Shown: one piece after another, positions 7,012-25,520 of the stretch
Layout: each line of letters starts with the position of its first letter
How positions within the stretch are numbered: the stretch's first letter is position 1
Origin: Heteronotia binoei
Taxonomy: Eukaryota
Assembly (NCBI RefSeq): GCF_032191835.1
Contig: NC_083232.1
Span: 43,710,001-43,774,000 of the forward strand
Direction of reading: 5' to 3'
Length of the DNA: 64,000 nucleotides
The notes under the pieces: generated by a model
Database searches by the model: none
Told to the model about the DNA's origin: nothing
What the model saw: only the letters and a program-made list of their open reading frames with translations
Made by a program: the position numbers and the translations under genes

Positions 7012-7191
7012 TCTTGATCATACCGCAAGTCCGCTCACAATCTTTCTCACTTGAAAATTTATTTTCATTCCCTCCACATCCACCATAATTGAACTCCTTG
7101 CAAGTCTGTGTGTATTGGTCGTAATACCATTTAGGAATGATAGCCTTGCAGAATCCTATATCGCTTGGCAGCAGGCAGATCTCCCTGTTGT
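7012..7191 (-). CDS. Kunitz exon (KD1 type), P1 = Lys
   Basis: 180 nt, DNREICLLPSDIGFCKAIIPKWYYDQYTQTCKEFNYGGCGGNENKFSSEKDCERTCGMIK; TTATAG acceptor, GTAAGT donor. Not listed in the ORF track. Confidence 0.93.
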
Positions 7192-10100
7192 CTATAAGAA
7201 AAAGGGAAATATAAGGTGCTTCAGTTCAATCTGATTGGACCTTGTAAATAGATCCCACTTCAACAAAAGCAGTCATGGTAGCCTCTGCCAACTGTGGACA
7301 GTTAACCCAAAAGCAAGAGATAATTTTCTCATGATCATTGTACATCATCTTCCAGTTGCCCATCAAGAGTCACCTTGGCATAGTGGTTACAGGGGCTAGA
7401 GAGACAGGATTTAAATCCCCACTCTGCCATAAAATTTGCTGGGTGACTTTAAGTCCCCTTCTACCTAGCCTACCTCATACAGCTGTGGTTGTGGAAGAAA
7501 TGGGTAAGAGGAAGGATAGGATAAGCAAATGATAGATATATAAGGGAACATAAGATAATGGAAGATAACAAAATATAAAGTTTGGGGAGGAACCAAGCAT
7601 TTGCATGGCACTGTCTGGGGCAGTGATGCTCTGCATTCTTGGTGCCTTGGAGGCAACAGTTGGAGGGCTTCCAGAGTCTGGCCTGCTGGTGGACCTCCTG
7701 ATGGACCTGGTGCTGCAAGCCATGGCAAGTTGGCTCAGGCTGAGTAGGTTGAAGCTGAATTCAATGAAGACAGAGGTCCTTTGCCTAGGTCATGGCAGTC
7801 TGGGAAGGGAAATCCCTCTTCCAGTTTTTGATGGTACGCCATTGAAAGTGGTGCGCAAGGTCAAGAGCTTGGGGATTCTACTGGAGCCTTCCTTGTCAAT
7901 GGAGGCCCAGATAGCAGCCACGGCTAAATCCGCTTTTTTCCACCTTAGACGTGCAAGGCAGTTGACTCCCTTCCTAGAGTGTGCCGGCTTGGCAACATGC
8001 AACGGTCACCTCGATTTGGATTACTGTAATGCTCTTGGATTACTGTAATGGGGCTGCCCTTGTGCCAAACCCAGAAGTTGCAGCTAGTGCAATGCGGCAG
8101 CCAGGCTGTTATTAGGGCTCCCGAAGTGGGAGCACATGCAACCGGGGCTGTGGACTTCAAACAGAGACAGGCAGCTGTCTAGCCTGAGATATCCTGCACA
8201 CAGGAAGGTGAGACTAAATTGCCTAGAAGGCTTCTTCCAATTCCAATAGGGGGGGGGGGGGAACAGTATGGAAAACAGCATTACCTTCCTCTGACAGGCA
8301 GTAATTCATACATGAAAATTTAGTCAAAAATCGATTTTCATTTCCTTTACATCCCCCATAGTAAAATCTGTCACACTTCATTGTATTCAGGTTAAAGAAA
8401 TATCTTTTATAGAAAGCTCCACATTTTCCTTCATTGAGTTCCGGTCGGCATTCTTTGGGAACTCCTAAAGTAAAAAGAATCTACATGTCAATCAAAAGGC
8501 CAACCTAAGGTCAATTTATGAGCCATGCTGCCTGGTTGGGCAAAGTGTCCATCCCTGTTGGCTGTGGTATGGCTGGTAGGACCAGTGGTCCATGGAGTTC
8601 CTCAATATTTCTATCAACAGTCTACACACAGTTACATTGACATCATCACAGACATGGAACACCGACCACATGGTAACCATTAACAATAAGGTTATGAAAA
8701 GGACATGGTCTTTTAAAAATGGAAGATTGTGTTCTTGGTAATCACAGGCTTTTTTCCCTACATTTATACCCTACTTTTCTCCACAGTGGGGACCCATAAC
8801 TGCTTACAGCATTACATTCTATTTTACCCCTCAGAATACCCCTGTGAGTGCATATAGCCAGCAATATAGTGGAACAGTTGCTGGATTGACCAAAAAAGAC
8901 CATAGAGGATGTTTATGTACACAGAAACATGCATAGCCTGGCCTCTCAGTTACACATGCCAAAAAGAGACCCAGCAAAGAATAGCCTTGGAGAGGGACAA
9001 GAATCAAAGTAGTAATGGCCTTGAGTTGATTAGATGTCAAAGTTGTTGAGGCCAAGGTGCAAAAGAATGTCAAGAATGTCCAATTTCACATAAGTGAACT
9101 TGTGGTTCAAAGATGGGGCATATTAGTTGGGGGCCAGAAGATATCTATAGGCATAAGACACTTGTGATTCTTATTTTTAAACAGGCTTTGTTAAGATAAT
9201 AGCAAGAATGAACAAATAGGTCTTATATATTTTAAGAAGGATTTTCATGTACAGATAACCTTGTATGGTGTTTGAGGATAAGCAGTTAATTAGCCAAGTA
9301 TGTGTGCCTTTATCAAGTGGGACAACCAGCTTTTGTTAGGAGATAATGTTCAGAACCTACAAATATGGGAAGCTGGATTGATTGAGAACTACTTCTCAGA
9401 AGTGACCTACTTATCTTTGGGGAAATATATATTTTATAAACTCATGTAATCGCTCTCCTTTAATTCTTTGCGTGCCTCTAATAGATGGTATAGATTGCTG
9501 TTGATTTGATAGGGAATGCAGCACTGCTTTAATAAAATGCTTTAATAAAAGATTAACATGGAAGCAATTTTTTTTAAAAAATGTATTATTTGTATGCTGT
9601 ATCCACAGCAGATCAAAAATGTTACTGAGTTCTACTTCAAGTCATTAGCTAAATGATCTGACATTGGAAAGTTAACACTAGATGTCCAGGGCTTTGTATG
9701 TACATGCCTATCTCTGAATCAGAGTTGACTAGAGTAGTTTGGATGAGAGACGACTGGTCCAAGATCACTCATCAAGCTTCCATGGTCGAATAGGGATTCA
9801 AAGCTGGGTCTCCAAGTTTGCATTCTGGCATTGTAGCCACAACATGCTTTAGAACAGCGATAGGGAACGTTGGCTCGCCAGATGTTTTTTTTGCCTACAA
9901 CTCCCATCAGCCCCAGCCATTGGCCATGCTGGCTGGGGCTGATGGGAGTTGTAGGCAAAAAGCATCTGGAGAGCCAACGTTCCCTACCTCTGGTTTAGAA
10001 CAATCCTTCCTAAGGTATTACTGTTCTAATTCCAGTGATTTTCTTGTTTACATAGGGGAAATAGTATAAAAGTCACTAACTACCTCATTCTGTGACTCAG

Positions 10101-12234
10101 TTATGCAAGCTGGCAACCCTAGTGGTGCATCTCACACATTATGAGCACAACTCCAAAACAGGACTTATTCCTATCTGCTCTTTAGCACCTCAGAAATGGC
10201 ACATGACACAAAATTGGACTGCTCTAGCTTATAAGGCACACAGAAAGCTTTAGGAGATCACAGGGTATCTATTTTGAAAGATTAACTTGAGTTGCTGCAG
10301 AAGACTTACAGTTAGAAGGATTGAAAGGACACAACATCTCAAATATGATGAGTATGCTTACTTAAAAAAACATAGGTTTCAAAATCTGTCCACAGAAACC
10401 AGTGACTATATTAAAGTGAGCAATGGAAACAGCAGTCTGTGGCCATGATGGTAGTAATAGAGGTCAGCAATGAAAACTTATTGTGACAAGAACCCACAAT
10501 TCATTTGAGATCACAATTATACAATGGATTGACTTACTCTTGATCATACCACAAGTCTGCTCACAATGTTCCTCACTTTCAAAGTTATTTTCATTCCCTC
10601 CACATCCACCATAATCAAACTCCTCGCAAGTCTGTGTGTATCGGTTGTAATACCAACTAGGAATGATAGCTCTGCATAATCCTATATCTCTTGGCATCAG
10701 GCAGATCTCTCTCTTATCTGTTTGAAAAAGGGAAAGAGAAGGTGCTTCAGTACAATCCAACTGGAATGTGTGTTTACCTTGCAAATAGATCCCACTTCAA
10801 CAAAAGCAGTCTTGGCAGCAGAGCACTATGGACAGTTAACCCAAAAGCAAGAGATAATTGTCCCATGACCGTTATGCACAGTCTTCCACCATCTTTCAGT
10901 TGCCCATCAAGAGTCAATTTGGCATAGTGGTTACAGAGGTTAGGGCTAGGGAGACGGGATTCAAATCCCCACACTGCCATGAAATTTGCTGGGTGACTTT
11001 GAGATAAGTCCCCTTCTACCTAGCGTATTTCATACAGCTATTGTTGTGGATGAAATGGGTAAGAGGAAGGATGGGATAAGCAAATGATAGATATAGAAGG
11101 GAACATAAGGTAAGGAAGGGATACTGTCATTTGGCTGTGCCAGGCTCTGACCAGGCTTGGCCTATCTTCCCTTGGCGTAGTGCTCACAGGGACTAGGACT
11201 AAGGAGACTGGATGCAAATCCCCAGGGTAGTCTACCATGAAATTTGCTGGGTAAACTTGAGATAAGTCCCCTTCTATGTAACCTACCTCATAGGGCTGTT
11301 GTGGATGAAATGGGTAAGAGGAAGGATGGGAAGTATATGATTGGAGATGAAGGTGAGCTTTTCTAGAAGAAGTTTGTGGAGGGACCACAGTGTAGTGGGA
11401 AAGCATCTACATGGCATCTAGAAGGTGCCAGGTTAGGTACCCTGTCAGCCCCCCCCCCCCCCATGCATACATTTCCAGCTAACGGGATCAGATAGCAGGT
11501 AATGTGAAAGACTTCCTCCTGAGACCCTGAAGAGCCCTTAGCAGTTTGAGCAGAATATGCCAACTTTGATAGACTAACAGTCTGATTCAGTATAAGGTGG
11601 CTTCATGTGTTGAAGGTTGACCTTAAATGGGACACACTTGACCTTTTGTAATAGGTAAAACTAGAGGCAAGCTGCAAGTGTCCTATCTATAGAAATTTTC
11701 TTTTGTGGACTGCACACTTCATGTTTGGATTACTTTAATTATGGGAATTAATACGGATAAAGAAAAACTGGCATGTGCCATATAAAAAGGTAAAGGTAGT
11801 CCCCTGTGCAAGCACCAGTCATACAGACCCCTAAATACTGCACGCGTGGTGTGTGTGTGTATGTGGGGAGGGCGGGGGCTGACTCCCTACTGCAGCTCCA
11901 GAGCAGTCGTCGAAGAACGGGTGCATCTACGAGTCAATTATTTATCCCTCCCAAACACTTCGAGTTCGGAGGGGAAAGGAAAGGGCCGGCGGATGTCTCG
12001 AAGAAGCATCACACTGTGCAAACGCACCGACCGGCTGGCGACGGAACTCCCCCTCTGTCGGTCCAAAGAAGCAATGGACAAAGCAACCCCAGAAGAGCTC
12101 TGGAGGGCCGCCGCGAAGCTGTTCCTCAAGCCATTACCTTTCACGGCGTCCCTGAAGGGACAGACATGGCCCAGAAGCAGCAAGAAGCAGCCTGCCAGCA
12201 AGGCGTCCTGTCGAGGTCCGGAGCGCAGCGCCAT
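7012..12234 (-). CDS. TFPI2-like paralog T3: signal peptide-KD1-KD2-KD1' (3' end not in window)
   Basis: Exons 12234-12138, 10717-10538, 8464-8285 and 7191-7012, all GT-AG and phase 1, join into an open frame with three six-cysteine Kunitz domains. Splicing in this order is inferred, not observed. Confidence 0.8.
7711..8155 (+). mobile_element. L2 LINE fragment
   Basis: ORF 7605-8048 (WLRLSRLKLNSMKTEVL...SAFFHLRRARQL...LDYCNAL) is homologous to the L2 at 18.5-20.3 kb. Confidence 0.85.
8285..8464 (-). CDS. Kunitz exon (KD2 type), P1 = Gly
   Basis: 180 nt, (R)VPKECRPELNEGKCGAFYKRYFFNLNTMKCDRFYYGGCKGNENRFLTKFSCMNYCLSEE; TTTAG acceptor, GTAATG donor. Not listed in the ORF track. Confidence 0.93.
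9855..9992. mobile_element. Short palindromic MITE
   Basis: Self-complementary: TAGGGAACGTTGGCTC...CTACAACTCCCATCAGCCCC / GGGGCTGATGGGAGTTGTAG...GAGCCAACGTTCCCTA. Confidence 0.7.
10538..10717 (-). CDS. Kunitz exon (KD1 type), P1 = Arg
   Basis: 180 nt, DKREICLMPRDIGLCRAIIPSWYYNRYTQTCEEFDYGGCGGNENNFESEEHCEQTCGMIK; AACAG acceptor, GTAAGT donor. Confidence 0.93.
12138..12234 (-). CDS. T3 exon 1, signal peptide
   Basis: MALRSGPRQDALLAGCFLLLLGHVCPFRDAVK, phase 1, donor GTAATG; homologous to TFPI2 exon 1; lies in a CpG-rich block. Confidence 0.88.
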
Positions 12235-12289
12235 TGCGAGCAAAGAGGATCTGGGGCGCAGCAGCGTTTGCCGTCCTCTGCCCGGGCCC

Positions 12290-12400
12290 CCGACCAGCCC
12301 CCTTTATATGGGCTAATGTTCTCCCCCCGCTCCGGCGGGGCGCGGAGAGGAAGGCCTGTCATGCCTGCTGGTTCTGCGCTTCACCCACTTCCCCAATAGT
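12290..12400 (-). promoter_or_regulatory. T3 core promoter (TATA box, GC boxes)
   Basis: TATAAA on minus at 12303-12308, about 70 nt above the ATG; GC-rich upstream; same layout in T2 and TFPI2. Confidence 0.65.
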
Positions 12401-12454
12401 ATTCTCCACTAGGTAATATGAAGGGGAAGGGGAGAGCGAGGGGTGGGGCACGCA

Positions 12455-12660
12455 AGGTTTTCATGCCAGATCTGGTTTGGGAAATTCCGGGAGGCTTGGT
12501 GGCGGAGCCTAGGGAGGGCGGGGTTTGGTGAAGGAGGCCCGCAGGGTATAATGCCATACAGTTTAGCTTCCAATGCTGCCATTTTGTCGAGAGGAACTGC
12601 TCTGGGTTGGAATACTTGCGATCTCCAGGCCACTCTCTGTTTGGAGGTTGGCAACCTTGC
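12455..12660. mobile_element. About 200-bp MITE in T3 promoter
   Basis: Similar to the inverted element at 42321-42511 and ends in GGTTGGCAACC; homologous copy in the T2 promoter at about 25575-25790. Confidence 0.55.
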
Positions 12661-13875
12661 TCTCTAGCCACACTAGTTTTCTCCACCATTTCCACAGAGA
12701 GAGTGGAGGTGTTCATCTTCCAGCTCACAGTGAGGAGTCAGGGTCTATAAGTTGACATACCCCCTGAATCCTATAGTTTCAAGATATTGAAAAGTATGTG
12801 TAATACTTAAAAACCTTCCTTTCTCCGAAATTTAAAGGTTAATCGCTGCAGCTTGTCAGATGTCAGAATTTGATTCAGCAACCCCAGATGCTTTGGAAAG
12901 CAGTGACTGAAGAGCCAACTATGGAAAGTACCACTTCTCTTCTTTTTATCCATGGGAATTTTAAACTGTGGGAGGGGGGTATTTTAAGATCTAAACATTA
13001 CAGGTGCAAACTGAACTGGCATACCAGAAATGGACTTAACACCTGCATATCCTTTTGAAAAATACTATATTGGTTTTACTGAAAGTGCTCAAGCTTTGCT
13101 GTAGAAGCACCTTTTCTAAATTTCTCCAAGATGGTGGCGGAAGGAAGGAGAAGCAATATTGCTGTAGCTTTAGTGTTCCTGAACTAATCCAAGTCTTGGA
13201 TGCAGCAGCAGGCAAAAATAAATAGCAATGGAGTGAATCCTTTGGCAATGTAATTATGTACTTCAAAATTTGACCTTCGTTCTGTTTCCTGAGGTGCCTG
13301 ATGAAGATGAATGATCATTGGCAGGGGAACAAAATAGGAGTCAAGTTGCACCTTTAAGACCAACTTAGTTTTATTGTCCACTTGGATCTATCATTGGCAG
13401 GGTTATTTCATAGAAAAAAAGGGGCCAGAGCTCATTATCACAACTCATTTGCACATCCCACACTCTCCTGACATCACCGGAAGGTATACTAAATTCTTTC
13501 AGCCCAGCATCTACCTTAAAAGGCTTCTTGTATAATACAACCTTACTCCTGTCATACTTTTTAAATTACTTTCTCCTACATGGCCACAGTGGCATGATGA
13601 AGATTTCTATCTATCTGCTTTATATGTTTTGGTTATTTTCCCATTTTTTGGTGGGGAAAAATATTACAAAGTTTGTCAGATCTTCAGTTCAGCAGCATTC
13701 TTACAGGGGCTTTGAATAATGGAGCCCAGAAGCAAAGGTTTTTTTTGGGGGGGGGGAGGTAAGAAAAGAAACAGCACAATAAAATTTAGAGGTTCTGGAG
13801 CTCCTGTCCAAAATGAGGCCTAATAATTGGTTAGACATTTTGAAGGATAATTATTACAAACATGTTAGTTCTCCT

Positions 13876-14073
13876 CAGGGCTTTGTTTGTAGAGAAAGCC
13901 CAGCTGGAACTCATTTGCATATTAGGCCTCGCCCTCTTATGTCACCACTGTGTCACACAGTGCTTTTTGTTGAAAAAGCCCAGCAGTGGCTCATTTGCAT
14001 ATTAGGCCACACCCCCTTAAACCAAGCTGACTGGAACTGCATTCCTGTGCGTTCCTGCTCAAAAAAAGCCCTG
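13876..14073. mobile_element. hAT-type MITE carrying two octamer motifs
   Basis: TIRs CAGGGCTTT / AAAGCCCTG, perfect 8-bp TSD GTTCTCCT (13868-13875, 14074-14081), ATTTGCAT twice. Relatives at about 22712-22886, 33387-33503, 57714-57910, 60075-60185 and 62092-62280. Confidence 0.8.
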
Positions 14074-14439
14074 GTTCTCCTGAAGTGGGGTGGGGGGCAG
14101 CATCTGTTTAAGCTGTGGGGTGGTGGGAAGACAGCAAGGGTAGGTGAGTGAGTGAAGGCCAAGGGTTGGTGGGTGGGTGGGAAGATAGCAAGGGGAGGGG
14201 GTGAGTGAAAGTCATGGGTGGGGAAGTAGTGGAGTGCCAAGGATGTGGGGGTAGTCAAGAGGAAGAGGTATTTTGGGGATAGGTGATATTTGGAGGTGGG
14301 GTTGGAAGTTGGAGGTGGGGGGGGAGTGAATGACTTCACTTGGGTGGGTGGGAAATCAGGAAGGGGGGGCACTTGCCAAGAGCCTCTTTCTAGAGCCCAT
14401 TGTATTTTTCTTCACAACAAGCCTTATTCCTAGTGATTG

Positions 14440-15810
14440 TATAAAAGCCAAAATAATGTTATCAGCCCTTATATCCCAATGAGTAGATGTTGCACTCTTG
14501 CAGGAGATTCGTCTGAAAAATAATCAGCTTCCTTTTTTCACATCTATTGGTTGCCCACATAGGTCAATGCTTCTGGAATGTCCAAGTCTAGAGGCACGGC
14601 AATATTATTATCCAAAGCAGTCAGATTTCACTTAGACGCCACTGAAATAAGTCCTACAGGTAGATTCATCTTTGTGAAAGGCAAAGGAAATGGGGATTTG
14701 ACCAACCCTAGCATCTATCTATGCATCAAATATGGGGCAACTAGATTTTCTTCACTCCACATTCTGTAAATTATTACAACTTCAAGAAGGCCTCATAATC
14801 TTAGGAGGTTATCTCAACCTTATTGCAGATCCTGTTAAAGGCAGATCTTCCTCAACTAAATTAAGACATTAAAATGGAATCATCAGAATGTCTATCAAAA
14901 CTTACTCAACTATTTAAGGAATATGATTATCTGGAGGGACCTTAACACTAACGTCATGGATTACACTTTTTACTTGACAAGACTGAAAATTTATACATGA
15001 ATAGATTATATTTTGGTATCTTCTCTGAGATGCAAAATTCTTCAAGCCTCTATTGGAATTATAAAATGGTTGTATCATGCCCCAGTAAAGTGTTCTGTGA
15101 TGAATAAAGTTGCAAATACCTATAGGTTTGATTGGTCACTTAATAAAAATTTATTGTTGGTTGATAATACATCCCTACCAATAGGAAATTAAATACTATT
15201 TCAAAAACAACATGAAATGCAGAGTTCCATTTCATACGGCTTGGGATGCATTCAAGGAAGTAATCCAGGAAAAGTGCTTTGCATTATTCTACAAAAAAAG
15301 GAAAAACCTTTTAAAACAATATCTTCTGTTACAGATTAAACAGCTAAAACAGCTACATAAGAAAAATTGAAGAACTTATAATCAGCTTCTAATAGAAAGA
15401 AAAAAATAGAATCATTAGAAGTTTCTCAAAAAAAATATTTTTAAACCCCTTATATTCTTTATTTAAACAATTCTGGCATAAAAATCCTAAATCATTTAAG
15501 ATTGTATCTTGGAAAATTCATTAAAAGCTATCATCTAGGCAAATTAATTCTATAAAAGATGAAAATTGTGTCTTACAATTTTCTATGCAATATTCATCGG
15601 ACTTTTGTCCAGTATTATTCTCATTTACATGGAACCTCAAATATGAACAAATCAATACTTAAATATCTAAATTCTTATTCAGAATATCATAAAATCTTTA
15701 TAGAACAACCAGCTTCAGGATGTTTTGGGCACTATTCTGTCACTAAAAAAATGGTAAAGCACCAGGCTGTGATGGGTTTCCAGCAGAATTTTCCAAAAAT
15801 ATTGTGAAAT
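14440..15810 (+). mobile_element. Heavily degraded L1 ORF2 (endonuclease region)
   Basis: MSKSRGTAILLSKAVRFHLDATEISPTGRFIFVKGK and ...RIDYILVSS-like remnants match the L1 APE endonuclease; many stops. Confidence 0.7.
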
Positions 15811-16009
15811 TCTAGCTGAACTGTTCACAGTTGTTTACAATCTTGTAATGAATCAGGGTATATCTCCAGTATCTTGGGCCTATGATAAAATATCTGATGT
15901 CCCCAAGAAAGAAAATGGGTAAGAGAAAGGAAGGGGTAAGCATATGATAGAAAGAAAAGGAAATATATGGTTTGGAAAGTGACCTCAGCATAGTGGTCAA
16001 GCATCTACA

Positions 16010-16199
16010 TGGCACTGTCTGGGGCAGTGATGTTCTGTATTCTTGGTGCCTGGGAGGCAACCATAGGAGGGCTTCTGGAATGTGACCCCATTGATGTATC
16101 TTATGAAGGCACCTGGATTTTGCCCACACTGTGATGCAGAATGTTGGACTGGATGAGCCATTGGCCTGATCCAACATGGCTTCTCTTATGTTCTTATGT
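16010..16199 (+). mobile_element. Short element with CR1-type 3' end
   Basis: Ends GGCCTGATCCAACATGGCTTCTCTTATGTTCTTATG; homologous copies at about 20330-20512 and 7595-7710 mark equivalent positions in the repeat units. Confidence 0.6.
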
Positions 16200-17359
16200 C
16201 CCAGGTTTGGTACTAAGCCCCCCCTACCCCCCATACACATTTCCAGCTAAAAAGATCAGCTAGCATCTAATGTGAAATACTTATGCCTGAAACCCTTAAG
16301 AGCCCTTGCCAGTGTGTATGGGGGGTGGGGCGGGGAAGCTTGATAGTTATGTACCCTCTCTCAGTAGAAGACAACAGACAGATTCCAGGGCATGTACTTG
16401 GACTGCTCCCCTTTTAAAAAAGCACAATATGCATCTGGGCTGATAGTTGGTGAAAAAGAGTGGTAATCTATCAGGTTGAGCCTGGCCATGGCCAACAGTG
16501 TGGGCACATGTGCTGCTGCCTCATTGCCAGCAAGTCTCACCACTCCCAACTCCACCTCCTAAGGGTGCCATACTTGCCTGCATTACCAGGGCAGTGAGGC
16601 AGGTTGGGATAGGAGTCCCTGGACCCAGAAGCAGCCAGATGCTCAACCTCTCCCAGGTTTTTTACATCTACCTCTGAGCAGAAATGGCATCTTGGTCTAT
16701 CTGGCTAGACTGGCAGTGATGCCATGGCCAAACTGGGTACCATAGCCATGGTTCCCTCTCTCTGGTAGTGATGATGGTGGTCTCCTTGCTTGTCTGCCTG
16801 GCCCCTGCCAGCCTTGCAGGGATGCTGTGATATGGTTGTGTCAGGCATTAGTGAGGCTTGGCCTATCTGCCCTCCTCACTTCCCATAGCTGACCTGAGCA
16901 GGGGGGTTCAGAAGTTATGGTTCCCCAAGGTTAGTGGTCCAACAGCATCTTTCTAGGTGGTCATAATGGCTAGTCTACTTCAGGTCCCAGACAGAAAAGT
17001 TAAGGGGACAGATATTAGTTGGTCAGGAATAGGTTTAGTGACTCAGCTCCAGAGTGTCTTACATCTCCCATTTCTTCCCTAACAATCTAGACAAAAACTG
17101 CAGGGACATTTCTCCTATCTCCTCAACAGAAAGGGAGACCTTTTTAAAGAAATGGAAGCTGGGAATTCAGAGGGACAACATAACTGTGTGAGAACACTGT
17201 CTGCATATGTTCCTGGAAGCCTGCTGATCACGAGGGGAGGGGGACTCTTGGCTTCTCTAGTGGACTAGAGACAGGCAGCTGTCTAGCTTGAGATTTCCTG
17301 CACAAAGGGAGGTGAGACTAGATTGCCTCAAAGGCTCCTTCCAATTCCAATAGCATTAC

Positions 17360-17479
17360 TTTCCTCAGGCAGTCAGTAATCCATACAGGAAAATGTAATG
17401 AAAGCTCAATTTCCATGTCCTTCACATCCTCTGCATTTGAATCTCTTGCACATAATTGTACATAGATTAAAGAAATATT
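17360..17479 (-). pseudogene. Pseudo-exon of KD2 type (5' third deleted, two stop codons)
   Basis: KYFFNLCTIMCKRFKCRGCEGHGN*AFITFSCMDY*LPEE; TGA at 17408-17406 and 17375-17373; acceptor and first two cysteines removed by a deletion fusing it to intron-2 sequence. Confidence 0.88.
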
Positions 17480-17856
17480 TCTATCTGCTCTTTGGCTTCC
17501 CTGAAATGACATATTATTGGACTACCCTAGCTGATACGGTGCACAGAAAGTTTTAGGTAGTTATAAAAACATATTAAGAAATATTAATTTGAGCTGTTGC
17601 AGCAAAATTATATTTTGGAGACTTGAAATGACACAGTATGACCATCTCACATATGAGTATGCATACTTAAAGAAAATAGGTTTCAAAATCTAGACTTAAA
17701 AGTACAATTAATCTGCAGAAACCAGTGACTATATTAAAGTGAGCAAAACAGTGGTCTGTGGCCATGATGGTAGTAATAGAGGTCAGCAGTGAAAACCTAT
17801 CATGACAAGAACTCACAATTCTTTTGGGATCACAATTATACAATGAATTGACTTAC

Positions 17857-18036
17857 TCTTCATTAAAACGCAAGTCTGCTCACAATCTTCCGGACTTTCA
17901 AAGTTATTGTCATTCCCTCCACATCCACCATAATCAAACTCCTTGCAAGTCTGTGTGTATTGGCTGTAATACCATCTAGGAATGATAGATCTGCATAATC
18001 CTATATCTCTTGACATCAGGCAGATCTCTCTCTTAT
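17857..18036 (-). CDS. Kunitz exon (KD1 type), P1 = Arg
   Basis: 180 nt, DKREICLMSRDIGLCRSIIPRWYYSQYTQTCKEFDYGGCGGNDNNFESPEDCEQTCVLMK; intact splice sites. Confidence 0.9.
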
Positions 18037-21000
18037 CTGTTTGAAAAAAAGAAAGAGAAGGTGCTTCAGTACAATCCGACTGAAGTGTCTGCACCATGTA
18101 AATAGATCCCACTTCAACAAAAGTAGTTTTGGGCAGCAGAACACTATGAACAGTTAACCCCCAAGCAAGAGATAATTGTCTTGTGGCCATTGTACACAGC
18201 CTTCCACCAGCTTCCAGTTGTCCATCAAAAGGCAATTTGGCGGAGTGGTTACAGGGACTTGGGAGATGGGATTCAAATTCCTGCTCTGCCATGAAATTTG
18301 CTGGGTGACTTTGAAATAAGTCCCCTTCTACCTAACCTACCTCAAAGGGCTGTTGTTGCAGATGAAATGAGTAATCATATGACAGAATGAAGGAAACAGG
18401 CTTTTTAGAAGTTTGCTGGAGGATGATGACATAGTGGCAATCTGCATGGAATGCAGAACTGTTCATAGTGTTCTGCTGCCCAAAACTATTGCTTCGACCC
18501 ACTCAGCTTGGAGGAAGTCGACAGAATTCTTGGCACTGCACGATCCACAACTTGCGATCTGGACCCTTGTCCCTCCTGGCTAATTAAGGCCTGCCAGGAG
18601 GAATTAAGATGTCCTATAAGGGACATCATAAATTGATCCCTTTCAGAGGGTGCTTTTCCAACACCCCTGAAAGAGGCAGTGGTCCGCCCTCTCCTAAAAA
18701 AAGCTACATCAGACCCGGCCGAATTGGCACATTACTGACCGGTCTCAAATTTGCCCTTTCTGGGTAAAATTATCGACAGGGCTGTGGTGTTGCAGTTACA
18801 GGATTTTTTGGAGGACGCTTCCGTCCTGGACCCATGCCAGTCTGGCTTTCGCCCGGGCCATGGGATGGAAACAGTCCTGGTTGCCCTCATGGATGACCTC
18901 TGGCGGCAACTGGACCGAGGCGGCTCGGCAGTATTGCTGCTGCTAGACCTATCGGCTGCGTTCGATATGGTCGATCATCGGCTGCTGTCCCGCCGCCTCA
19001 CCGACACAGGAATTCGGGGGCTAGCCTTACAGTGGCTCTCCTCCTTCCTTGAAGGTTGGGGACAAAGGGTGGCAATTGGGGGGGAACTGTCTCAGAGACA
19101 CGCACTTCACTGTGGGGTGCCTCAGGGGCAGTTCTCTCCCCGATGTTGTTCAACATCTTTATGCGCCCCCTTGCCCAGATTGCACGGAGGTACGGGCTTG
19201 GCTGTCATCAGTACGCTGATGATACCCAGCTCTATCTATTGATGGACGCTCTATCTATAGGGACTGGTGATGTCCCTATAAATCTGGACCAGGCGTTACA
19301 AGCCGTGGCTGACTGGCTCAGGCTGAGTGGGCTGAAGTTGAACCCAGCGAAGACTGAGGTCCTTTGCGTGGGCCGCGGCGGACCAGGAGGGGAGATCATC
19401 CTACCGGCTTTTGACAATGTGCCACTGATACCAGTGCGCAGGGTCAAGAGCCTGGGAGTGCTACTGGAATCCTCTTTATCAATGGAGGCCCAGATAGCTG
19501 TCACTGCTAGAGCCTCCTTCTTCCACCTCAAGAGGGCGAGGCAGTTGGCTCCCTTCTTGGAACGCAGCAACCTAGCAACTGTGATCCACGCAACAGTCAC
19601 CTCGAGATTAGACTACTGCAATGCCCTCTACATGGGGCTGCCCTTATACCGAACACGGAAACTCCAGGTAGTGCAGAACGCGGCGGCCAGGCTGCTGGTG
19701 GGACTACCTCGGTGGGAACACGTGCAGCCTGGGCTGCGGGACCTGCACTGGCTGCCGGTTGTGTACCGTGTTCGCTATAAGGTGCTGGTTATTACCTTTA
19801 AAGCCCTATATGGCCGAGGGCCTGCCTACCTTAGGGACCGCCTCTCCCCATATGTCCCCCAGAGAGCACTGAGATCTAGCTCTCAAAATCTTTTAAAAAT
19901 CCCTGGGCCAAGAGAAGCTAGACTGAAGACAACCAGGGAGCAAGCCTTTTCAGCAATGGCCCCGCGATGGTGGAATCAACTTCCAGAGATGATGCGAGCC
20001 CTGCAGGACCTGAATCAGTTCCACAGGGCTTGCAAAACTTTTCTCTTTCAGCTTGCTTTTAAGATAGAACCTGGCTAAATTGAATTGACCTGTAGCCATC
20101 CAGCCATCTATGTATGATTGTGATCTATAGCACCTTATAGCACCTGTTTTTATCTATTTTAATTAATTTATGTAATTGAATTGTATTTTAAAAACTCTTG
20201 TTTACATTGTATTTTATTCAAATCATGGTGTCCCATGTCTGTGAGCCGCCCTGAGCCCGCCTTTGGTGGGGGAGGGCGGGATATAAAAATAAATTTACTT
20301 TACTTTACTTTACAGTGTAGTGTCCAGGCATCAGCATGGCACTATTGAGCAGTGGTGATCTGTATTCTTGGTGCCTGGTGGGCAGCAGTGGAAGGGCTTC
20401 TAGTGTCTAGTCATGTTGGCTGACCACCTGATGGCACGTGGGTTTTGGCCACTGTATGACAGAGTGTTCAACTGGATGGGCCATTGGCCTGATCCAACAT
20501 GGCTTCTCTTATATAATTATTTCCCAAGTTTGGTACCTAGTCTACCTTTCCCCCCACATTTCCAGCTAAAAGGATCAGATAGCAGCTAATGTGAAATACT
20601 TATGCCTGGGAACTTAAAGTGCCCTTTCCAGTGTGAGTGGTGGGGGGGGGGGGGAAGCTTGATAGTTATGCGCCCACCCTCAGTAGAAGACAACAGACAT
20701 ATCCCAGGGCATGTACTTGGACAGCTCACCTTTTAAAAAGCACAATATGCATCTGGGCTGATAGGCAGAGAAAAGGAGTGGTAGCCTAGCAGGTTGAGCC
20801 TGGTCATGGCCAACAGCATGAGCACATGTGCTGCTGCCTTGTTGCCAGCAAGTCTCACCCCACTCCCCTACTCCACCTCTGGAGCTGAGGGTGCTGCACT
20901 TACCTCCATTACCAGGGCAGTTTATGTACAGTGAGGCTGGCTGTGACAGGAGTCCCTGGACCCAGAAGCACCCAGATGCTTCCCCCACCCCCGCTCAACC

Positions 21001-23116
21001 TCTCCCAGGCTCTTCAAACCTACCTCTGAGCAGAAATGGCATCCTGGTCTACCTGGCTCACCTGGCAGTGATGCCATGGCCAAAATGGGTACCACCGACA
21101 TGGCTACCTCTGCCTCATAGTGATGGTGATGGTGGCCTCCTTGCTTGTCTACCTGGGCTCTGACAGCCTTGCAGGGATCCTGTACCAGACACTGGCCTAT
21201 CATGGCCTATCTGTCATCCTCACTCCCTATAGTTGACCTGAACAGGGGGATTCAGAAGTTATGGTTCCCCAAGGCTACGGGTCTATCAGTAGCTTTCCAG
21301 GTGGCCATAATGGCTAGTCTACTTCTGATCCTAGACAGAAAGGTTCAGGGGACAGATATTATTTTGTCAGGAATCGGTTCAGTGACTCAGCTGAGCTCCA
21401 GAGCCTCTTACAGCTCCCATTCCTTCCCTAACAATCCAGACAAAGACTGCAGGCACATTTCCTCCTCTATCTACCCAATGAAAAGTGCAAGAGACCTTTT
21501 TAATGAAATGAAAGCTGGGGATTCAGAGGGACAACATCATTTATTGAGAACACTGCCTGCATATGCCCTCTGTTGCTGCTGGCCTGCTGACCCTGAGGGG
21601 AAGTGGGGGCTTGGCCTCTCTAGTGGACATCAAACAGAGACAGGCAGCTGCCTAGCCTGAGATTTCCTGCATAGCAGGAGATGAGACTAGATTGCCTACA
21701 AGGCCCCTTCCAATTCAAAGATTCTAGTATAGGAAATAGCATTACCTTCCTCTGACAGGCAGTGATCTATACATGAAGATTTAGTCAAAAATCGATTTTT
21801 ATTTCCTTTACATCCTCTGTAGTTGAATTTCTCACAACTCATTGTATTTAGGTTAAAGAAATATCTTGTAATGTAATGTTCACATTTTCCTTCATCTGGT
21901 TCCAGTCGGCATTTTTTGGGAACTCCTAAAATAAAAAGAATGTGTGTCAATCAAAAGCCCAGGTTAAGGTCAATTTATGAGCCATGCTGTCTGATTGGGC
22001 AAAGCGTCCACCCCTTAAGGCTTCGGTATGGCTGGTAGGACCAGTGGTCCATGGCATTCCTCAGTCCTTCTATCATCAGTCTAAACACAGTTACACTGGC
22101 ATCTTCACAGACATGGAACACTGACCACATGCTAACCATTAACAAAAAGGTTATGAAAAGTACATGGTCTTTTAAAAATGGAAGATTGTGTTCTCAGTAG
22201 TCACAGGCTATTTATTTCTATATTTACCCTATTTTTTCTCCACAGTGAGGACCCATGATGGATTACAACATAGGGCTTTATTTGAACCCGCAAAACATCA
22301 CTGTGAGGTAGTATCGTGCATATAGCCAGGAATATAGGGGAACAGTTATTAGACTTGACCCAAAATATCACAGAGCATGTTCTTTACAGAAATATGGATA
22401 GCCTGGCCTCTCAGTTACACATGCCAAAAAGGGAGTTCAGAGACCCAGCAAAGAATAGCTTTGGAGTGGGACAAGAATCAAAGTAGTAACACAATTATAT
22501 GCCCTTGTGTTGATTAGAAGCTGCGGTATCCCTGTCGATATTGTTGAGGCCCAGGTGCAAAAAAGTCTGAGAATGGCAAGAATTTCCAACTTCACATAAG
22601 TGAACTTATGGATCAAAGATGGGATGTATTGGTTGAGGACCAGAAGATATGTCTATGAGACGACACTTGTAATCCTTGTTTTTAAATAGGCCTTATTAAA
22701 ATAAACAGTAGCAGGGCTTTTTTGAGCAGGAACGCAGTTCCGGCTGGTCTGGTGCCAGGGAATGTGGCCTAATATGCAAATGTATCCCCACTGGGCTTTT
22801 TCTATGTGAAACAACGATGAAATCAGGGGGTGTGGCCTAATATGCAAATGAGTTCCTGCTGGGCTCTTTCTACCAAAAAAGCCCTGTGAACAAGCATCTC
22901 TTATACAGTATATTTTAAGAAGGCTTTTCATGTACAGATAACCTTGTATGGTGTTTGAAGGTATGTAGTTAGTGAAGAATGTGTGCCTGCATCATGTGGG
23001 GAAGCTAGCTTTTGTTAGGAGATTATGTTCAAAACCTACAAATATGGGATGCTGAATTGACTGAGTTTCTTCTCAGAAGGGGCTACTTGCTTGTGACCTA
23101 CTTATATTTGGGGAAA

Positions 23117-23149
<33 letters not shown>

Positions 23150-25360
23150 AATTATTTGTGTAACGCTAATAGATGGTATAGATTTCTGAAGATTTGTTGT
23201 GAATGCATCATCACTTTAATAAAATGTTTAATAAAAGATTACCATGGAGGCATCTCACGTATTATGAGCAGAACTCCAAGACAGGAACTTATTTCTATCT
23301 GCTCTTTAGCACCCTAGAAATAGCACAGGACCCATAATTGGGCTGCCCTACTTATAAAGTTGGAAAAACAACAAAATACTATCCCCATGTACAAAACTAT
23401 TTCTCAATGTAATATATAGTCACAACAATTCGTAATATTTTTACAATACAGATATGCAGTTAAATGTCTTGTGCATGACATAGCTACTGTCCATAAATTA
23501 TAATATTTTCTGAATCCAGTCCGATGATAAAAAGAACCTGTCCAATTTCATTTTGGGTGTGGGCCACCCTTCTTCTAGGGGCCGTCTTCCAAATTCATAG
23601 ATTCAGTAGACTTGTGCTACAACTATTCCTGGCTTCCTCTGGGTTTTTTTTTACATTTTATTCATATGAAATGAATGCCACTGTGAATTTCTATCTATCA
23701 GTACACTGACAACAATCCAAAATTCATTTGGGATCACAATTATAAAATTAGTTTACTTACTCTTGATCTCACCACACATCTGCTCACAATCTTTTTCACT
23801 TGGGAATTTATTTTTATTCCCTCCACATTCACCAAAATTAAACTTCTTACAAGTCTGTTTGTATCGGTCGTAATACCAACCAGTCCTTGGAGCATTTTTA
23901 GATCGGCAAAATGCTCTGTCTTTTGGCAGTAGGCAGATATCCCTGTTGTCTGTAAGAAAAAGGAAAAGAGAAGGCGCTTCAGTAAAATCTGATTGGAAGA
24001 AGGATATTGGATTTATATCCCGCCCTCCACTCCAAATCTCAGAGTGGCTCACAATCTCCTTTTACCTTCCCACAACAGACACCCTGTGAGGTGGATGGGG
24101 CTGAGAGGACTCTCACAGTAGCTGCCCTTTCAAGGACAACCTCTGCCAGAGCTATGGCTTACCCAAGGCCATTCCAGCAGGTGCAAGTGGAGGAGTGGGG
24201 AATCAAACCCAGAGTCCACACACTTAACCACCACCAGACTGGCTCTCTACTCCAAACTGGAGTGTGTTTGCACCTTGTAAACAGATCCCACTTCAACAAA
24301 AGCAGTCTTGGCAGCAGAGTACTATGGACAGTTAGTTCCCAAGCAAGAGATAATTGTCTCATGGCCATTGTGCACAGCCTTCCACCAACTTCCAGTTGCC
24401 CATCAAAAGTCAATTTGGCAGAGTGGTTACAGGGATGAGGGAGATGAAATTCAAATTCCCGCGCTCTGCCATGAAATTTGCTGGGTGACTTTGAAAAAGT
24501 CCCCTTCTATCTAGTTTACCTCAAAAGGCTGTTGTTGCCAATGAAAGGGTAATCATATGATAGAATGAAGGAAACAGAGGCAAATTTTTCTAGAAGTTTG
24601 CGGGAGGACAATGGCATAGTGGCAATCTTCATGGGATGCAGAAGTTCTTAGGTTAGGTACCCTGTCTCCCCTCCCCCCCCCACACGCACATTTCTAGCTA
24701 AAATGATCAGATAGTATAGCAGGTAATGTGAACGACTTCTCTGCCAGAGACCCTGACTAGTACTTGGCTGTGTCAGCAGAAAATGCCAACTTTGACAGAC
24801 TAAGGGTCTGACTCAACATAAGGCCGCTTCATGTGTTGAGGGCTGACCTTAAATGGGACAAGCGTGACCGTTTGTAGCAGGTTAAACTAGGGGCAAGCTG
24901 CAAGTGTCCTATCTATAGAGATGTTTTTTTGTAGACTGGACATTTCACATCCGGGTTACTTTGGTTGTGGGAATTAATATGGGTAAAGAAAGACTGGCAT
25001 GTACCATATAGACCCCTGAATATTGGGTTGGGGGAGTAGTTCTAGAGCAGTCGTCGAAGAAGGGGCGCTTCTCACGCTTCTGGTACGGAGAGGAAAGGAA
25101 AAAGCCGGCGGATGTCTGGACAGGAGCACCACGCCGTGCAAACGCACCGACCCGTCGGCGACTGCATCCCCCCTCGGTCGGTCCAATGAAGCAATGACCA
25201 AAGCAACCCGAGAAGAGCCCGGGAGGGCCACCGCGAAGCCGCTCCTCAAGCCAACACCATTCACGGGGTCCCTGAAGGGCCAGGCAAGGTGGCCCAGAAG
25301 CAGCAGCCAGAAGCAGCCTGCCAGCAAGGCGACCTGTCGGGGTCTGGGGCGCAGCGCCAT
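17857..25360 (-). CDS. TFPI2-like paralog T2: signal peptide-KD1-KD2-KD1' (then pseudo-KD2; terminal exon not identified)
   Basis: Exons 25360-25258, 23949-23761, 21925-21746 and 18036-17857 are all phase 1 and join in an open frame. The exon-1 donor is a weak GTGTTG. Splicing is inferred. Confidence 0.72.
18472..20292 (+). mobile_element. 5'-truncated L2 LINE
   Basis: RT motifs (PVSNLPFLGK, QSGFRPGH, LLDLSAAFD, YADDTQLY) across ORFs 18751-19242 and 19056-20078 with a frameshift near 19127; L2 3' end and (TTTAC)n tail. Confidence 0.93.
21746..21925 (-). CDS. Kunitz exon (KD2 type), P1 = Glu
   Basis: 180 nt, (R)VPKKCRLEPDEGKCEHYITRYFFNLNTMSCEKFNYRGCKGNKNRFLTKSSCIDHCLSEE; intact splice sites. 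Confidence 0.93.
23761..23949 (-). CDS. Kunitz exon (KD1 type) with 3-residue insertion in the binding loop
   Basis: 189 nt, DNRDICLLPKDRAFCRSKNAPRTGWYYDRYKQTCKKFNFGECGGNKNKFPSEKDCEQMCGEIK; six cysteines, frame kept, TTACAG acceptor and GTAAGT donor. Confidence 0.9.
24001..24248 (-). mobile_element. Squam3-like SINE in T2 intron 1
   Basis: Near-identical to 2032-2307; about 50 nt above the KD1 acceptor; absent at the equivalent site of the other repeat units. Confidence 0.85.
25258..25360 (-). CDS. T2 exon 1, signal peptide
   Basis: MALRPRPRQVALLAGCFWLLLLGHLAWPFRDPVN, phase 1; donor GTGTTG at the position where T3 has GTAATG. Confidence 0.85.
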
Positions 25361-25409
25361 CACGAGCAAAGAGAATCTGGGGCGCAGTCGCGTTTGCCGG
25401 CCTCAGCCC

Positions 25410-25520
25410 CGCTCAGGCCCTTTTATAGGGGCCCAAACTCGCCTCCCGCTCCGCTGGGGCGCAGGGAGGAGGAAGGCCGGTCATGACTGCTGGCTCCGCT
25501 CTTCAGCCGCTGCCTCAATA
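25410..25520 (-). promoter_or_regulatory. T2 core promoter (TATA box, GC-rich)
   Basis: TATAAAA on minus at 25421-25427; CpG-rich block about 25.0-25.75 kb. Confidence 0.65.

Follow-up and report, generated by a model that had tools for sequence, protein, structure and literature searches.

A fast-evolving cluster of paralogous Kunitz genes lies next to TFPI2 in the gecko Heteronotia binoei, with residues probably changing at a neutral rate on a retained scaffold and exons diverging at the pace of introns. The window, a 64,000-nucleotide stretch of contig NC_083232.1, contains TFPI2 and two TFPI2-like genes, here designated A and B; its positions 1-22234 match H. binoei CM063334.1 at 100% identity. 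Since the duplication that gave rise to A and B, non-cysteine Kunitz residues have probably been replaced at an approximately neutral rate (pN, pS, and intron divergence are similar, and omega is approximately 1), so that the exons keep pace with the introns but do not outrun them. Over the same period, purifying selection has preserved the scaffold of disulfides, the open frames, the splice sites, and the signal peptides. Such a pattern fits secreted Kunitz proteins that need their fold but whose surfaces are weakly constrained. The difference between the KD2 domains of the two genes at P1-P4' is a one-sided remodeling of gene B KD2, with Gly36 and Tyr34 included. This remodeling might be adaptive retargeting or might be loss of a canonical inhibitor in a domain type that is noninhibitory in human TFPI-2; the data here could fit either and do not separate them. 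Because amino acid change proceeds at about the intron rate and not above it, adaptive retargeting is possible but unproven.

Gene structure and ancestry

Genes A and B share one layout, a signal exon followed by three Kunitz domains of one exon each, arranged KD1-KD2-KD1 (Table 1). The Kunitz exons lie on the minus strand in phase 1-1, bounded by AG/GT splice sites. A cysteine-pattern scan placed their six cysteines at BPTI positions 5, 14, 30, 38, 51, and 55, and the Pfam PF00014 profile recovered nine Kunitz exons at 55 to 81 bits each (gathering cutoff, 21). None of the nine full exons has a stop, a frameshift, a lost cysteine, or a lost splice site. PDB sequence matches include 1zr0 (the TFPI-2 KD1 structure) and BPTI, in register 5-55. 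An earlier note on this DNA correctly described all six cysteines and splice sites as kept and P1 as R, R, R, K, E, and G. Signal exons were sought by their ATG, hydrophobic core, and phase-1 GT donor; three were identified in the window, and tblastn related that of gene B to those of gene A and TFPI2. In self-alignment, the unit at 6808-13306 (gene A) matched 17624-26403 (gene B). The gene A signal exon, KD1a, KD2a, and KD1c together equal P0001, an NCBI protein named "tissue factor pathway inhibitor 2-like."

Table 1. Features of the TFPI2 cluster, in window coordinates
Feature	Position	Strand	Basis or remark
TFPI2 ortholog signal-peptide exon, ATG at 35646, phase-1 donor	35553..35646	-	ATG/hydrophobic-core/GT-donor scan
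TFPI2 KD1 exon, P1 Arg	34834..35013	-	cysteine pattern, splice sites, PF00014 E = 6e-23
TFPI2 KD2 exon, P1 Arg	33143..33322	-	cysteine pattern, splice sites, PF00014 E = 6e-20
TFPI2 KD3 exon, P1 Ser	32047..32220	-	cysteine pattern, splice sites, PF00014 E = 3e-20
TFPI2 probable terminal coding exon, short basic tail and stop	29955..29983	-	acceptor/ORF scan, inferred
Gene B signal-peptide exon, donor GTGTTG	25258..25360	-	signal-exon scan
Gene B Kunitz exon 1, KD1b, P1 Arg	23761..23949	-	PF00014 E = 7e-15
Gene B Kunitz exon 2, KD2b, P1 Glu, loop EHYIT, Y34N, G36R	21746..21925	-	
Gene B Kunitz exon 3, KD1x, KD1-type, P1 Arg	17857..18036	-	unit position from self-alignment
Truncated KD2 pseudo-exon, residues 20-59 only	17361..17480	-	
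Gene A signal-peptide exon	12138..12234	-	identical to NCBI protein P0001 residues 1-32
Gene A Kunitz exon 1, KD1a, P1 Arg	10538..10717	-	cysteine pattern, splice sites, PF00014
Gene A Kunitz exon 2, KD2a, P1 Gly, loop GAFYK	8285..8464	-	cysteine pattern, splice sites, PF00014
Gene A Kunitz exon 3, KD1c, KD1-type, P1 Lys	7012..7191	-	cysteine pattern, splice sites, PF00014
Low-divergence intron block chosen in the earlier note	8581..8750	.	partner 22040-22209
Alignable gene A intron upstream of KD2a	8465..9566	.	partner 21926-23252; local neutral reference

The gene at 29955-35646 has the features of a TFPI2 ortholog (signal peptide, KD1 with P1 Arg, KD2, KD3 with P1 Ser, and a basic tail) and is collinear with TFPI2 of Gekko japonicus (P0006) and Sphaerodactylus (P0003). 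Its signal-exon peptide closely matches the N terminus of the Gekko protein, and the tail encoded by the probable terminal exon matches the C terminus of that protein. Genes A and B adjoin this gene on the same strand, have exons of the KD1 and KD2 types together with a related signal exon, and are lineage-specific tandem copies downstream of the TFPI2 ortholog. A TFPI2-like gene also lies directly downstream of TFPI2 in Eublepharis and Sphaerodactylus, and the paralog has been kept in three gecko families. It is probable that the paralog was already present in the common ancestor of geckos and that the A/B duplication, with approximately 15 to 20% neutral divergence, is younger. The old gecko paralog has apparently been unstudied so far, and its further duplication and rebuilding as KD1-KD2-KD1 genes in Heteronotia are of modest interest. 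The KD1 copies have reticulate, mosaic relationships, probably as a result of gene conversion.

The parent gene in the window has the signal exon, KD1, KD2, KD3, and basic tail of human and other vertebrate TFPI2 (placental protein 5; PMC11554837), and the KD1- and KD2-type exons of the paralogs are clearly derived from TFPI2 KD1 and KD2. However, unlike TFPI2, the paralogs have a KD1-type exon in the third position in place of KD3, no basic tail recognizable within the window, and Gly or Glu at P1 of KD2, where gecko TFPI2 has Arg. Ruminant TKDP1-5 are likewise a lineage-restricted tandem Kunitz expansion with exon-level rearrangement and fast divergence (PMC1817651, PMC3426482). The TKDPs arose from the CTI/PTI locus, join one Kunitz domain to novel N-domains, and are documented to be expressed in the placenta (PMC1817651, PMC3426482), whereas the gecko genes are derived from TFPI2 and have three Kunitz domains. 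The products of genes A and B are putatively secreted and may be functional. In a skink, pregnancy brings strong induction of TFPI2 in the uterus (PMC3318437), so that a role of the paralogs in the reproductive tract deserves consideration.

Exon and intron divergence

The earlier note proposed that the Kunitz exons evolve faster than their introns. Its counts were reproduced exactly: KD1a and KD1x differ at 15 nt in 13 codons (12 amino acid changes and 1 silent change), KD2a and KD2b differ at 27 of 180 nt in 22 codons (19 amino acid changes and 3 silent changes), including GAFYK versus EHYIT at P1-P4', and the chosen intron block differs from its partner at 17 of 170 positions. However, when full intron alignments supplied the neutral rate, exon and flank divergence were equal, and the proposed excess disappeared. 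Intron divergence reaches a local low in this block, which is unrepresentative. Only 4.3% of all A-versus-B noncoding windows of 170 columns have 17 or fewer mismatches, as do 16.5% of the local intron windows, for which the mean is 23.9 per 170.

For the KD2 pair, divergence was 15.0% in the exon versus 121/848 (14.3%) in the full flanks (Fisher p = 0.82). The corresponding values were 15.0% and 14.9% for the third-exon pair and 20.6% and 21.8% for the first-Kunitz-exon pair. The KD1 pair chosen in the earlier note (exon, 8.3%; flanks, 13.0%) is not positional, because it sets the first Kunitz exon of gene A against the third of gene B. All of the exon-versus-flank Fisher tests on Kunitz exons were nonsignificant. 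Noncoding divergence between A and B was 884/4575 (0.193) overall and 0.143 to 0.149 in the local flanks. With the three positional exon pairs pooled, pN was approximately 0.170 to 0.171 and pS was 0.169 (summed by hand). Exon divergence or dN above intron divergence, the mark of accelerated toxin evolution, was not found, with pooled pN at approximately 0.171 versus 0.193 in noncoding DNA. These comparisons correct a tempting over-reading of a hand-picked 170-nt block and reveal no clean signature of adaptive evolution.

Codon models were fitted with the author's own likelihood code (not PAML or HyPhy) on fixed topologies with F3x4 frequencies, and their results carry the caveat that the reticulation among KD1 copies violates the tree model. 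The sample of 59 codons in 6 young sequences gave low power for detecting omega above 1. Within the Heteronotia paralog clade, omega was 1.02 and 0.99, and omega = 1 was not rejected (p = 0.94 and 0.97); Fisher tests of pairwise dN/dS gave p = 0.42 and 0.58. The branch-site test was not significant (2dlnL = 1.13, p = 0.14-0.29). Contact-site omega was 1.6 in the paralog clade versus 1.06 elsewhere, and the contrast between contact sites and the rest lost its significance after cysteines were set apart (p = 0.135). These codon models are consistent with unusually fast replacement on a conserved scaffold (omega approximately 1.0) but give no robust omega above 1.

The venom Kunitz/BPTI family of snakes (Zupunski & Kordis 2016, PMC5107962) resembles the gecko cluster in that both comprise tandem squamate Kunitz genes with one exon per domain, in which the cysteine scaffold is kept and surface and loop residues are replaced. 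In the snake family, site models give strong omega above 1 in 30 to 50% of the domain, and introns are highly conserved (PMC5107962). In contrast, exon and intron divergence are equal in the gecko cluster, omega is approximately 1, and no test is robustly significant. Furthermore, the gecko genes are multidomain TFPI2 derivatives in a nonvenomous animal, whereas the snake genes are single-domain toxin genes.

Reactive loops of the paralog domains

The suggestion that change is concentrated at the reactive site held for the KD2 pair but not for the KD1 pair, which has 1 replacement among 13 contact residues. For the KD2 pair, the probability of a run of at least five replaced residues somewhere in the exon was 0.08, and that of seven mismatches in 15 nt was 0.11. 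When changes were polarized with the ortholog of the leopard gecko (Eublepharis), all 7 contact replacements of the pair fell on KD2b. KD2a retains the Gly P1 found in Eublepharis, and its contact-site omega is 0. Omega at KD2b contact sites was approximately 8.6 versus 1.7 in the rest of the domain, and omega = 1 was rejected at a nominal p of 0.015, although this was the only nominally significant branch of eight and the value was approximately 0.12 after Bonferroni correction. Replacement of 7 of 13 contact residues on the KD2b lineage had p = 0.002-0.013 in simulations at the intron rate, whereas the unpolarized pair gave p = 0.06. The second loop of KD2b, 45 nt from the P1-P4' block, also changed, at Tyr34 and Gly36. 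Because the contact-loop excess of KD2b is nominally above neutral, some positive selection may hide within the average omega of 1.

In human TFPI-2, KD1 is the domain type with inhibitory activity, and proteases are inhibited through Arg24 (PMC11554837). The KD1-type paralog domains keep a basic P1 like Arg24; P1 is Arg or Lys in all four of them and varies in KD2 only. KD1a, KD1c, and KD1x combine a basic P1 with Gly12, Tyr35, Gly36, and Gly37, all canonical Laskowski-type features. Departures from these features are found in KD1b (G12A, Y35F, G37E, and a 3-residue insertion after the P1 loop, between Cys14 and Cys30), KD2a (P1 Gly), and KD2b (P1 Glu and G36R). Since the KD2b and KD1b changes affect the normally conserved Gly36, Gly37, Gly12, and Tyr35, they look like loss, not tuning.

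It is possible, though doubtful, that constraint on gene B was relaxed recently or that this copy is dying; its first two domains would have lost their canonical inhibitor loops and would go on to decay, gene A would carry the function, and the cluster of changes in KD2b would reflect relaxation plus chance. Loop-destabilizing changes are confined to gene B (Y34N and G36R in KD2b and those listed above in KD1b), and the absence of contact change in KD2a fits this explanation, as do the weaker signal-exon donor of gene B and a SINE inserted 46 bp ahead of the acceptor of KD1b. Whereas gene A is represented by an NCBI model, the locus table and two word searches contain no protein-coding gene call for gene B, which may thus already be nonfunctional, but absence from the word index is weak evidence because H. 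binoei's own TFPI2 is likewise unlisted there. However, all three Kunitz exons of gene B have open frames, six cysteines, and splice sites, its sole indel is in frame, and its signal exon is conserved relative to that of gene A. Relaxation alone would also predict a loop omega of approximately 1, not the approximately 8 estimated for KD2b.

The earlier note favored diversifying selection that retargets Kunitz domains to new proteases through loop-focused change, as in venom Kunitz toxins. The nominal excess of contact replacements on KD2b, the higher contact-site omega in the paralog clade, the maintained frames and scaffold, and the precedent in snake venom Kunitz genes (PMC5107962) are consistent with this proposal. 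However, dN/dS across the clade is indistinguishable from 1 and the branch-site test is not significant, the exons are not faster than the introns, the contrast of contact sites with the rest loses significance when cysteines are set apart, and the KD2b signal weakens when the number of branches is corrected for or when polarization is withheld. In two loop codons, neighboring nucleotides both changed, and double changes of this kind inflate such tests. The conserved Arg or Lys at P1 of the four KD1-type domains and the alteration of normally conserved loop residues in KD2b and KD1b also argue against retargeting. Diversifying selection in this cluster is therefore unproven, and general retargeting appears unlikely. 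It is similarly unlikely that positive selection rebuilt both protease-binding loops of KD2b after the Heteronotia-specific duplication (P1 Gly to Glu, P1'-P4', Tyr34, and Gly36), yielding an inhibitor or binder of a new target. If it did, KD2b would be a gecko-specific counterpart, outside venom, of the Kunitz toxins of snakes and the TKDPs of ruminants.

Hypervariability of the reactive centers of protease inhibitors (serpins and ovomucoids) was reportedly described by Hill and Hastie in 1987 and by Laskowski et al. in 1987. KD2b is similar in that replacements pile up at the enzyme-contact residues of one domain. The classical cases span many orthologs and paralogs, whereas the gecko signal comes from one branch and 13 codons. 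The one-sided loop remodeling of KD2b offers a testable hypothesis. That the paralog domains retain their fold while changing at the neutral rate is of modest interest.

An origin of the P1-P4' block in one or two mutational events, either as a multinucleotide mutation or as a short patch that was templated or came from gene conversion, is improbable. The 7 nucleotide changes within 15 nt include double changes at adjacent positions in two codons (GCT to CAT and TAT to ATT), 4.6% of 15-nt intron windows are equally dense, and the mosaic relationships at the locus are typical of conversion. However, searches of the window and of the loci retrieved from this genome, with up to 2-3 mismatches allowed, yielded no donor, and the change in the second loop occurred on the same lineage.

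Constraint on the Kunitz scaffold

The six paralog exons keep 36 of 36 cysteines (P < 5e-5 under neutral simulation) and are free of stops (P = 0.007). In their alignments, one indel, in frame, was seen in 540 nt where 13.8 were expected (P = 1.5e-5), and neutral evolution of the cysteine codons was rejected (2dlnL = 12.2, p ~5e-4). Constraint extends to the signal exons, which differ by 8.2% between A and B versus 21.8% in their flanks (p = 0.001). The kept cysteines, open frames, and absence of frameshifts rule out plain pseudogene decay of the paralog exons. That all of these exons are neutral relics, with an omega of approximately 1 and equal exon and intron divergence reflecting decay, is strongly disfavored and highly improbable given these results and the persistence of the paralog in three gecko families. 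The truly dead KD2 copy at the same locus, in contrast, has two stops and a lost cysteine (Cys55) within 40 codons and is without an acceptor site; it is an internal example of neutral decay.

Gene layout and gecko relatives

Nine intact Kunitz exons lie in the window. Those listed in an earlier note read on the minus strand, in phase 1-1 with a 2-nt offset, and encode perfect Kunitz domains. Each of the nine passed Pfam PF00014 and carries a polypyrimidine tract, an AG acceptor, and a GTAAG/GTAAT-type donor. The exon peptides follow BPTI numbering (Cys5, Cys14, P1 = 15, Cys30, Cys38, Cys51, and Cys55), and PDB matches align with them in the register 5-55 on 5-55. Exon KD1b (3-residue insertion) was skipped by the cysteine-pattern scan and was picked up by self-alignment, which also revealed that the unit at 6808-13306 is a copy of 17624-26403. 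Together with three signal-peptide exons with phase-1 donors, these results indicate three minus-strand genes, TFPI2 and two TFPI2-like paralogs designated gene A and gene B. An arrangement of four two-domain genes was rejected because the signal-exon scan found no signal exon upstream of KD1x or KD1c.

Exons of TFPI2 and its two paralogs, and a truncated pseudo-exon, in window positions
Feature	Positions	Strand	Remark
TFPI2 signal exon	35553-35646	-	
TFPI2 KD1	34834-35013	-	
TFPI2 KD2	33143-33322	-	
TFPI2 KD3	32047-32220	-	
TFPI2 probable short basic tail exon	near 29955-29983	-	
Gene B signal exon	25258-25360	-	
Gene B KD1b	23761-23949	-	first Kunitz exon
Gene B KD2b	21746-21925	-	second Kunitz exon
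Gene B KD1x	17857-18036	-	third Kunitz exon
Truncated KD2 pseudo-exon	17361-17480	-	residues 20-59 only, directly downstream of KD1x
Gene A signal exon	12138-12234	-	
Gene A KD1a	10538-10717	-	first Kunitz exon
Gene A KD2a	8285-8464	-	second Kunitz exon
Gene A KD1c	7012-7191	-	third Kunitz exon

The order KD1-KD2-KD1 in gene A is confirmed by the model from NCBI itself. Protein P0001, 'tissue factor pathway inhibitor 2-like [Heteronotia binoei]' (264 aa), consists of the signal exon, KD1a, KD2a, and KD1c, followed by a tail; it was the sole protein returned by a word search with the natural ORF around KD1x, in which only the Kunitz part was scored. The H. binoei locus from CM063334.1 (L001) is 100% identical to window positions 1-22234. 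The predicted terminal exon of gene A in the NCBI model lies at L001 34624-34821, about 12.5 kb past the window start, and the tail that it encodes is non-basic and unrelated to the TFPI2 tail. The terminal-exon search yielded a convincing tail exon for TFPI2 only, and a terminal exon for gene B was not found. Neither the L001 locus table nor two word searches, one with the KD1x ORF and one with full-length P0001 as query, contained a protein-coding call for gene B, which is weak evidence because H. binoei TFPI2 itself is also unlisted.

Related genes are present in other geckos. Eublepharis macularius has a TFPI2-like gene about 6 kb downstream of TFPI2 (P0011; locus L002, 10001-14405), modeled as a signal exon plus two Kunitz exons, one KD1-type and one KD2-type with Gly at P1. 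In Sphaerodactylus townsendi a signal exon and a KD1-type exon lie about 6.6 kb downstream of TFPI2 (locus L003, 23390-23938). Thus, the paralog is older than the sampled gecko families, and the duplication that gave A and B is confined to the Heteronotia lineage. Because Kunitz exons number only two in the Eublepharis model, the third one, of KD1 type, may have been added in the lineage of Heteronotia. Downstream of gene A, about 17 kb past the window start, L001 39333-39443 is a degenerate KD3-type exon fragment, and about 21 kb past it L001 43333-44631 is another copy of the 5' region of the paralog (79% to window 25084-26393). Therefore, the cluster runs past the window and once included KD3.

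Divergence at replacement, silent, and intron sites

The earlier note proposed that the Kunitz exons outrun their introns under diversifying selection, with change focused at the reactive site. Its hand counts were reproduced for the KD1a/KD1x pair (15 nt; 12 replacement codons and 1 silent), the KD2a/KD2b pair (27/180 nt; 19 replacement and 3 silent), and one intron block (17/170). The faster evolution of exons disappears when all alignable intron sequence is considered, because divergences are then equal. Between genes A and B, the KD2 exon differs at 0.150 and its flanks at 0.143 (121/848), the third Kunitz exon at 0.150 and its flanks at 0.149 (77/518), and the first Kunitz exon at 0.206 and its flanks at 0.218. 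The signal exon is less diverged, at 0.082 versus 0.218 for its flanks (p = 0.001). The 170-nt intron block is a local minimum of divergence: similarity this high is reached by only 4.3% of all 170-column intron windows and by 16.5% of local windows, and 37% of the latter match or exceed the divergence of the KD2 exon.

The KD1 exons that had been compared are not positional counterparts but the first Kunitz exon of gene A and the third of gene B. For this pair the divergence of the exon, 8.3%, does not exceed that of its flanks (upstream 15.5%, downstream 8.3%, and combined 13.0%). Among the KD1-type copies KD1a, KD1c, and KD1x group together with KD1b outside, and the relationships of the flanks conflict with those of the exons. 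These reticulate sequence relationships suggest gene conversion, and therefore only local exon-flank comparisons are fair. Divergence over all non-coding sequence was 0.193 (884/4575), or 0.187 without the block 7702-8153 versus 19285-19739 (divergence p = 0.255), which overlaps LINE reverse-transcriptase ORFs and may be non-orthologous.

By the Nei-Gojobori method KD1a/KD1x had dN = 0.099, dS = 0.049, and omega = 2.0 (Fisher p = 0.42), and KD2a/KD2b had dN = 0.172, dS = 0.166, and omega = 1.04 (p = 0.58). Hand totals for the three A-B exon pairs that correspond in position gave a pN of 0.170 and a pS of 0.169. The rate is equal at replacement, silent, and intron sites.

Codon likelihoods were computed with home-made code (GY-type, F3x4, fixed trees, and a synonymous rate common to classes) from 59 codons per domain and six young sequences, and the trees were held fixed although gene conversion is likely. 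With window sequences only, omega was 0.35 for TFPI2 and the stem branch and 1.02 for the paralog clade (difference, p = 0.009), and omega = 1 was not rejected for that clade (p = 0.94). Branch-site model A assigned omega2 = 1.5 to 65% of sites without significance (2dlnL = 1.13). With cysteines set apart, omega for the other residues was 1.18 and did not differ from 1 (p = 0.58). For contact residues, set from textbook BPTI-trypsin contacts as 11-13, 15-19, 34-37, and 39, it was 1.62 versus 1.06 for the others, again with cysteines set apart, and neither this difference (p = 0.135) nor an excess over 1 (p = 0.18) was significant. When gecko outgroups were included, omega was 0.54 for TFPI2 orthologs, 0.58 for the stem, 0.63 for old paralog branches, and 0.99 for the Heteronotia clade. 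No contrast among these classes reached significance, including those of the Heteronotia clade with the old paralog branches (p = 0.28) and with all others (p = 0.11). Omega for the TFPI2 Kunitz exons (32047-35013, L002, and L003) is rather high among geckos, about 0.54, and the family background is therefore already weakly constrained.

Maintenance of the fold and changes in the reactive loop

Decay of the whole cluster into pseudogenes is excluded by absent stops, kept cysteines, and a deficit of indels. In neutral simulations with fitted branch lengths, the probability of no stop in the six paralog exons was 0.007, and that of keeping 36/36 cysteines was below 5e-5. Intron indel openings, at 25.6/kb, predict 13.8 over 540 nt of Kunitz-exon sequence, where a single in-frame 9-nt insertion was seen (P = 1.5e-5). 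Neutral evolution of the cysteine codons was likewise rejected (2dlnL = 12.2). The pseudo-exon at 17361-17480 is an example of real decay at this locus, with two stops and the loss of Cys55 and core Phe45 in 40 codons, and 24% divergence. It shares Arg36 with KD2b and other states with KD2a, and its flank 15991-17478 is a copy of 20318-21864; its history is therefore mosaic.

The loop sequences GAFYK and EHYIT and the P1 residues R, R, R, K, E, and G were as previously reported. Clustering of change at the reactive site held for the KD2 pair, in which 7/13 contact residues differ, but not for KD1a/KD1x, in which 1/13 does. Unpolarized, the KD2 pattern gave p = 0.06 at the intron mutation rate for the contact differences, p = 0.08 for a run of at least five replaced residues anywhere, and p = 0.11 for seven mismatches in 15 nt, a density equaled by 4.6% of intron 15-mers. 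When changes were polarized with the Eublepharis paralog and TFPI2 KD2 exons, 7/7 contact replacements fell on KD2b (G15E, A16H, F17Y, Y18I, K19T, Y34N, and G36R), and KD2a retains Gly at P1 and Tyr at P3', as in Eublepharis. Contact omega was 0 for KD2a and 8.6 on the KD2b branch, where omega = 1 was rejected (p = 0.015); simulation at half the intron distance gave p = 0.002-0.013 for the KD2b excess. KD2b was the sole nominal hit among eight Heteronotia branches tested, and the corrected p is therefore about 0.12. Two of these codons have adjacent double changes, which are known to produce false positives in such tests. No donor for a conversion patch of this loop was found in the window or in the other loci examined from this genome, with up to 2-3 mismatches allowed. 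KD1b of gene B has the 3-residue insertion in its loop together with G12A, Y35F, and G37E, with a contact omega of 1.6 that was not significant. Every KD1-type domain has Arg or Lys at P1. The inhibitory activity of human TFPI-2 is in KD1, via the P1 arginine (PMC11554837). Thus, the specificity residue of the inhibitory domain type is conserved rather than diversified.

Genes A and B are probably a young tandem pair of predicted secreted TFPI2-like genes whose Kunitz folds are maintained, whose non-cysteine residues drift at about the neutral rate, and in which the binding loops of gene B's first two domains are remodeled. This remodeling may reflect either adaptive retargeting or a loss of canonical inhibition. 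It is doubtful that gene B is relaxed or dying. Adaptive retargeting through the gene B loops, to which the polarized KD2b changes point and against which the corrected p weighs, is rather unlikely. Both readings overlap with that of a maintained fold with drifting residues.

Snake venom Kunitz/BPTI genes combine fast evolution, loop replacements, and strong omega > 1 with conserved introns (PMC5107962), and the ruminant TKDPs are Kunitz expansions that are lineage-specific and show rearranged exons (PMC1817651, PMC3426482). The gecko cluster resembles both in its conserved scaffold and variable surface but is without their defining statistical signatures. No paper on the TFPI2-like genes of geckos turned up in literature searches. 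TFPI2 is strongly up-regulated in the pregnant uterus of one skink (PMC3318437), which by analogy may hint at where the gecko paralogs could be expressed.

Repeats and other elements

Four copies of a tRNA-derived SINE of the squamate 'Sauria' type, recognized by its sequence, lie at 2032-2304, 23996-24255, 45346-45625, and 53716-53993 and are 82-94% alike. The second ends 46 bp upstream of the KD1b acceptor in gene B, and gene A lacks it. Fragments of LINE reverse-transcriptase ORFs (Pfam RVT_1) occur at 242-1138 (+), 2288-3871 (-), and 19056-20078 (+), the last of which is inside the KD2b-KD1x intron of gene B and matches LINE-derived sequence of gene A at 7605-8153. A tRNA-Pro(GGG)-like sequence at 5972-6046 (-) was detected by Rfam (58 bits) and ARAGORN, and Rfam and tRNA scans of the window gave nothing beyond this match. 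Intron 1 of gene A contains a direct repeat (10919-11088 versus 11172-11341, 79% identity) with related copies at 7373-7533 and 18237-18374. Upstream of TFPI2, an inverted repeat of about 450 bp with 85% identity (40523-40968 versus 62406-62851) probably represents two copies of a transposable element.
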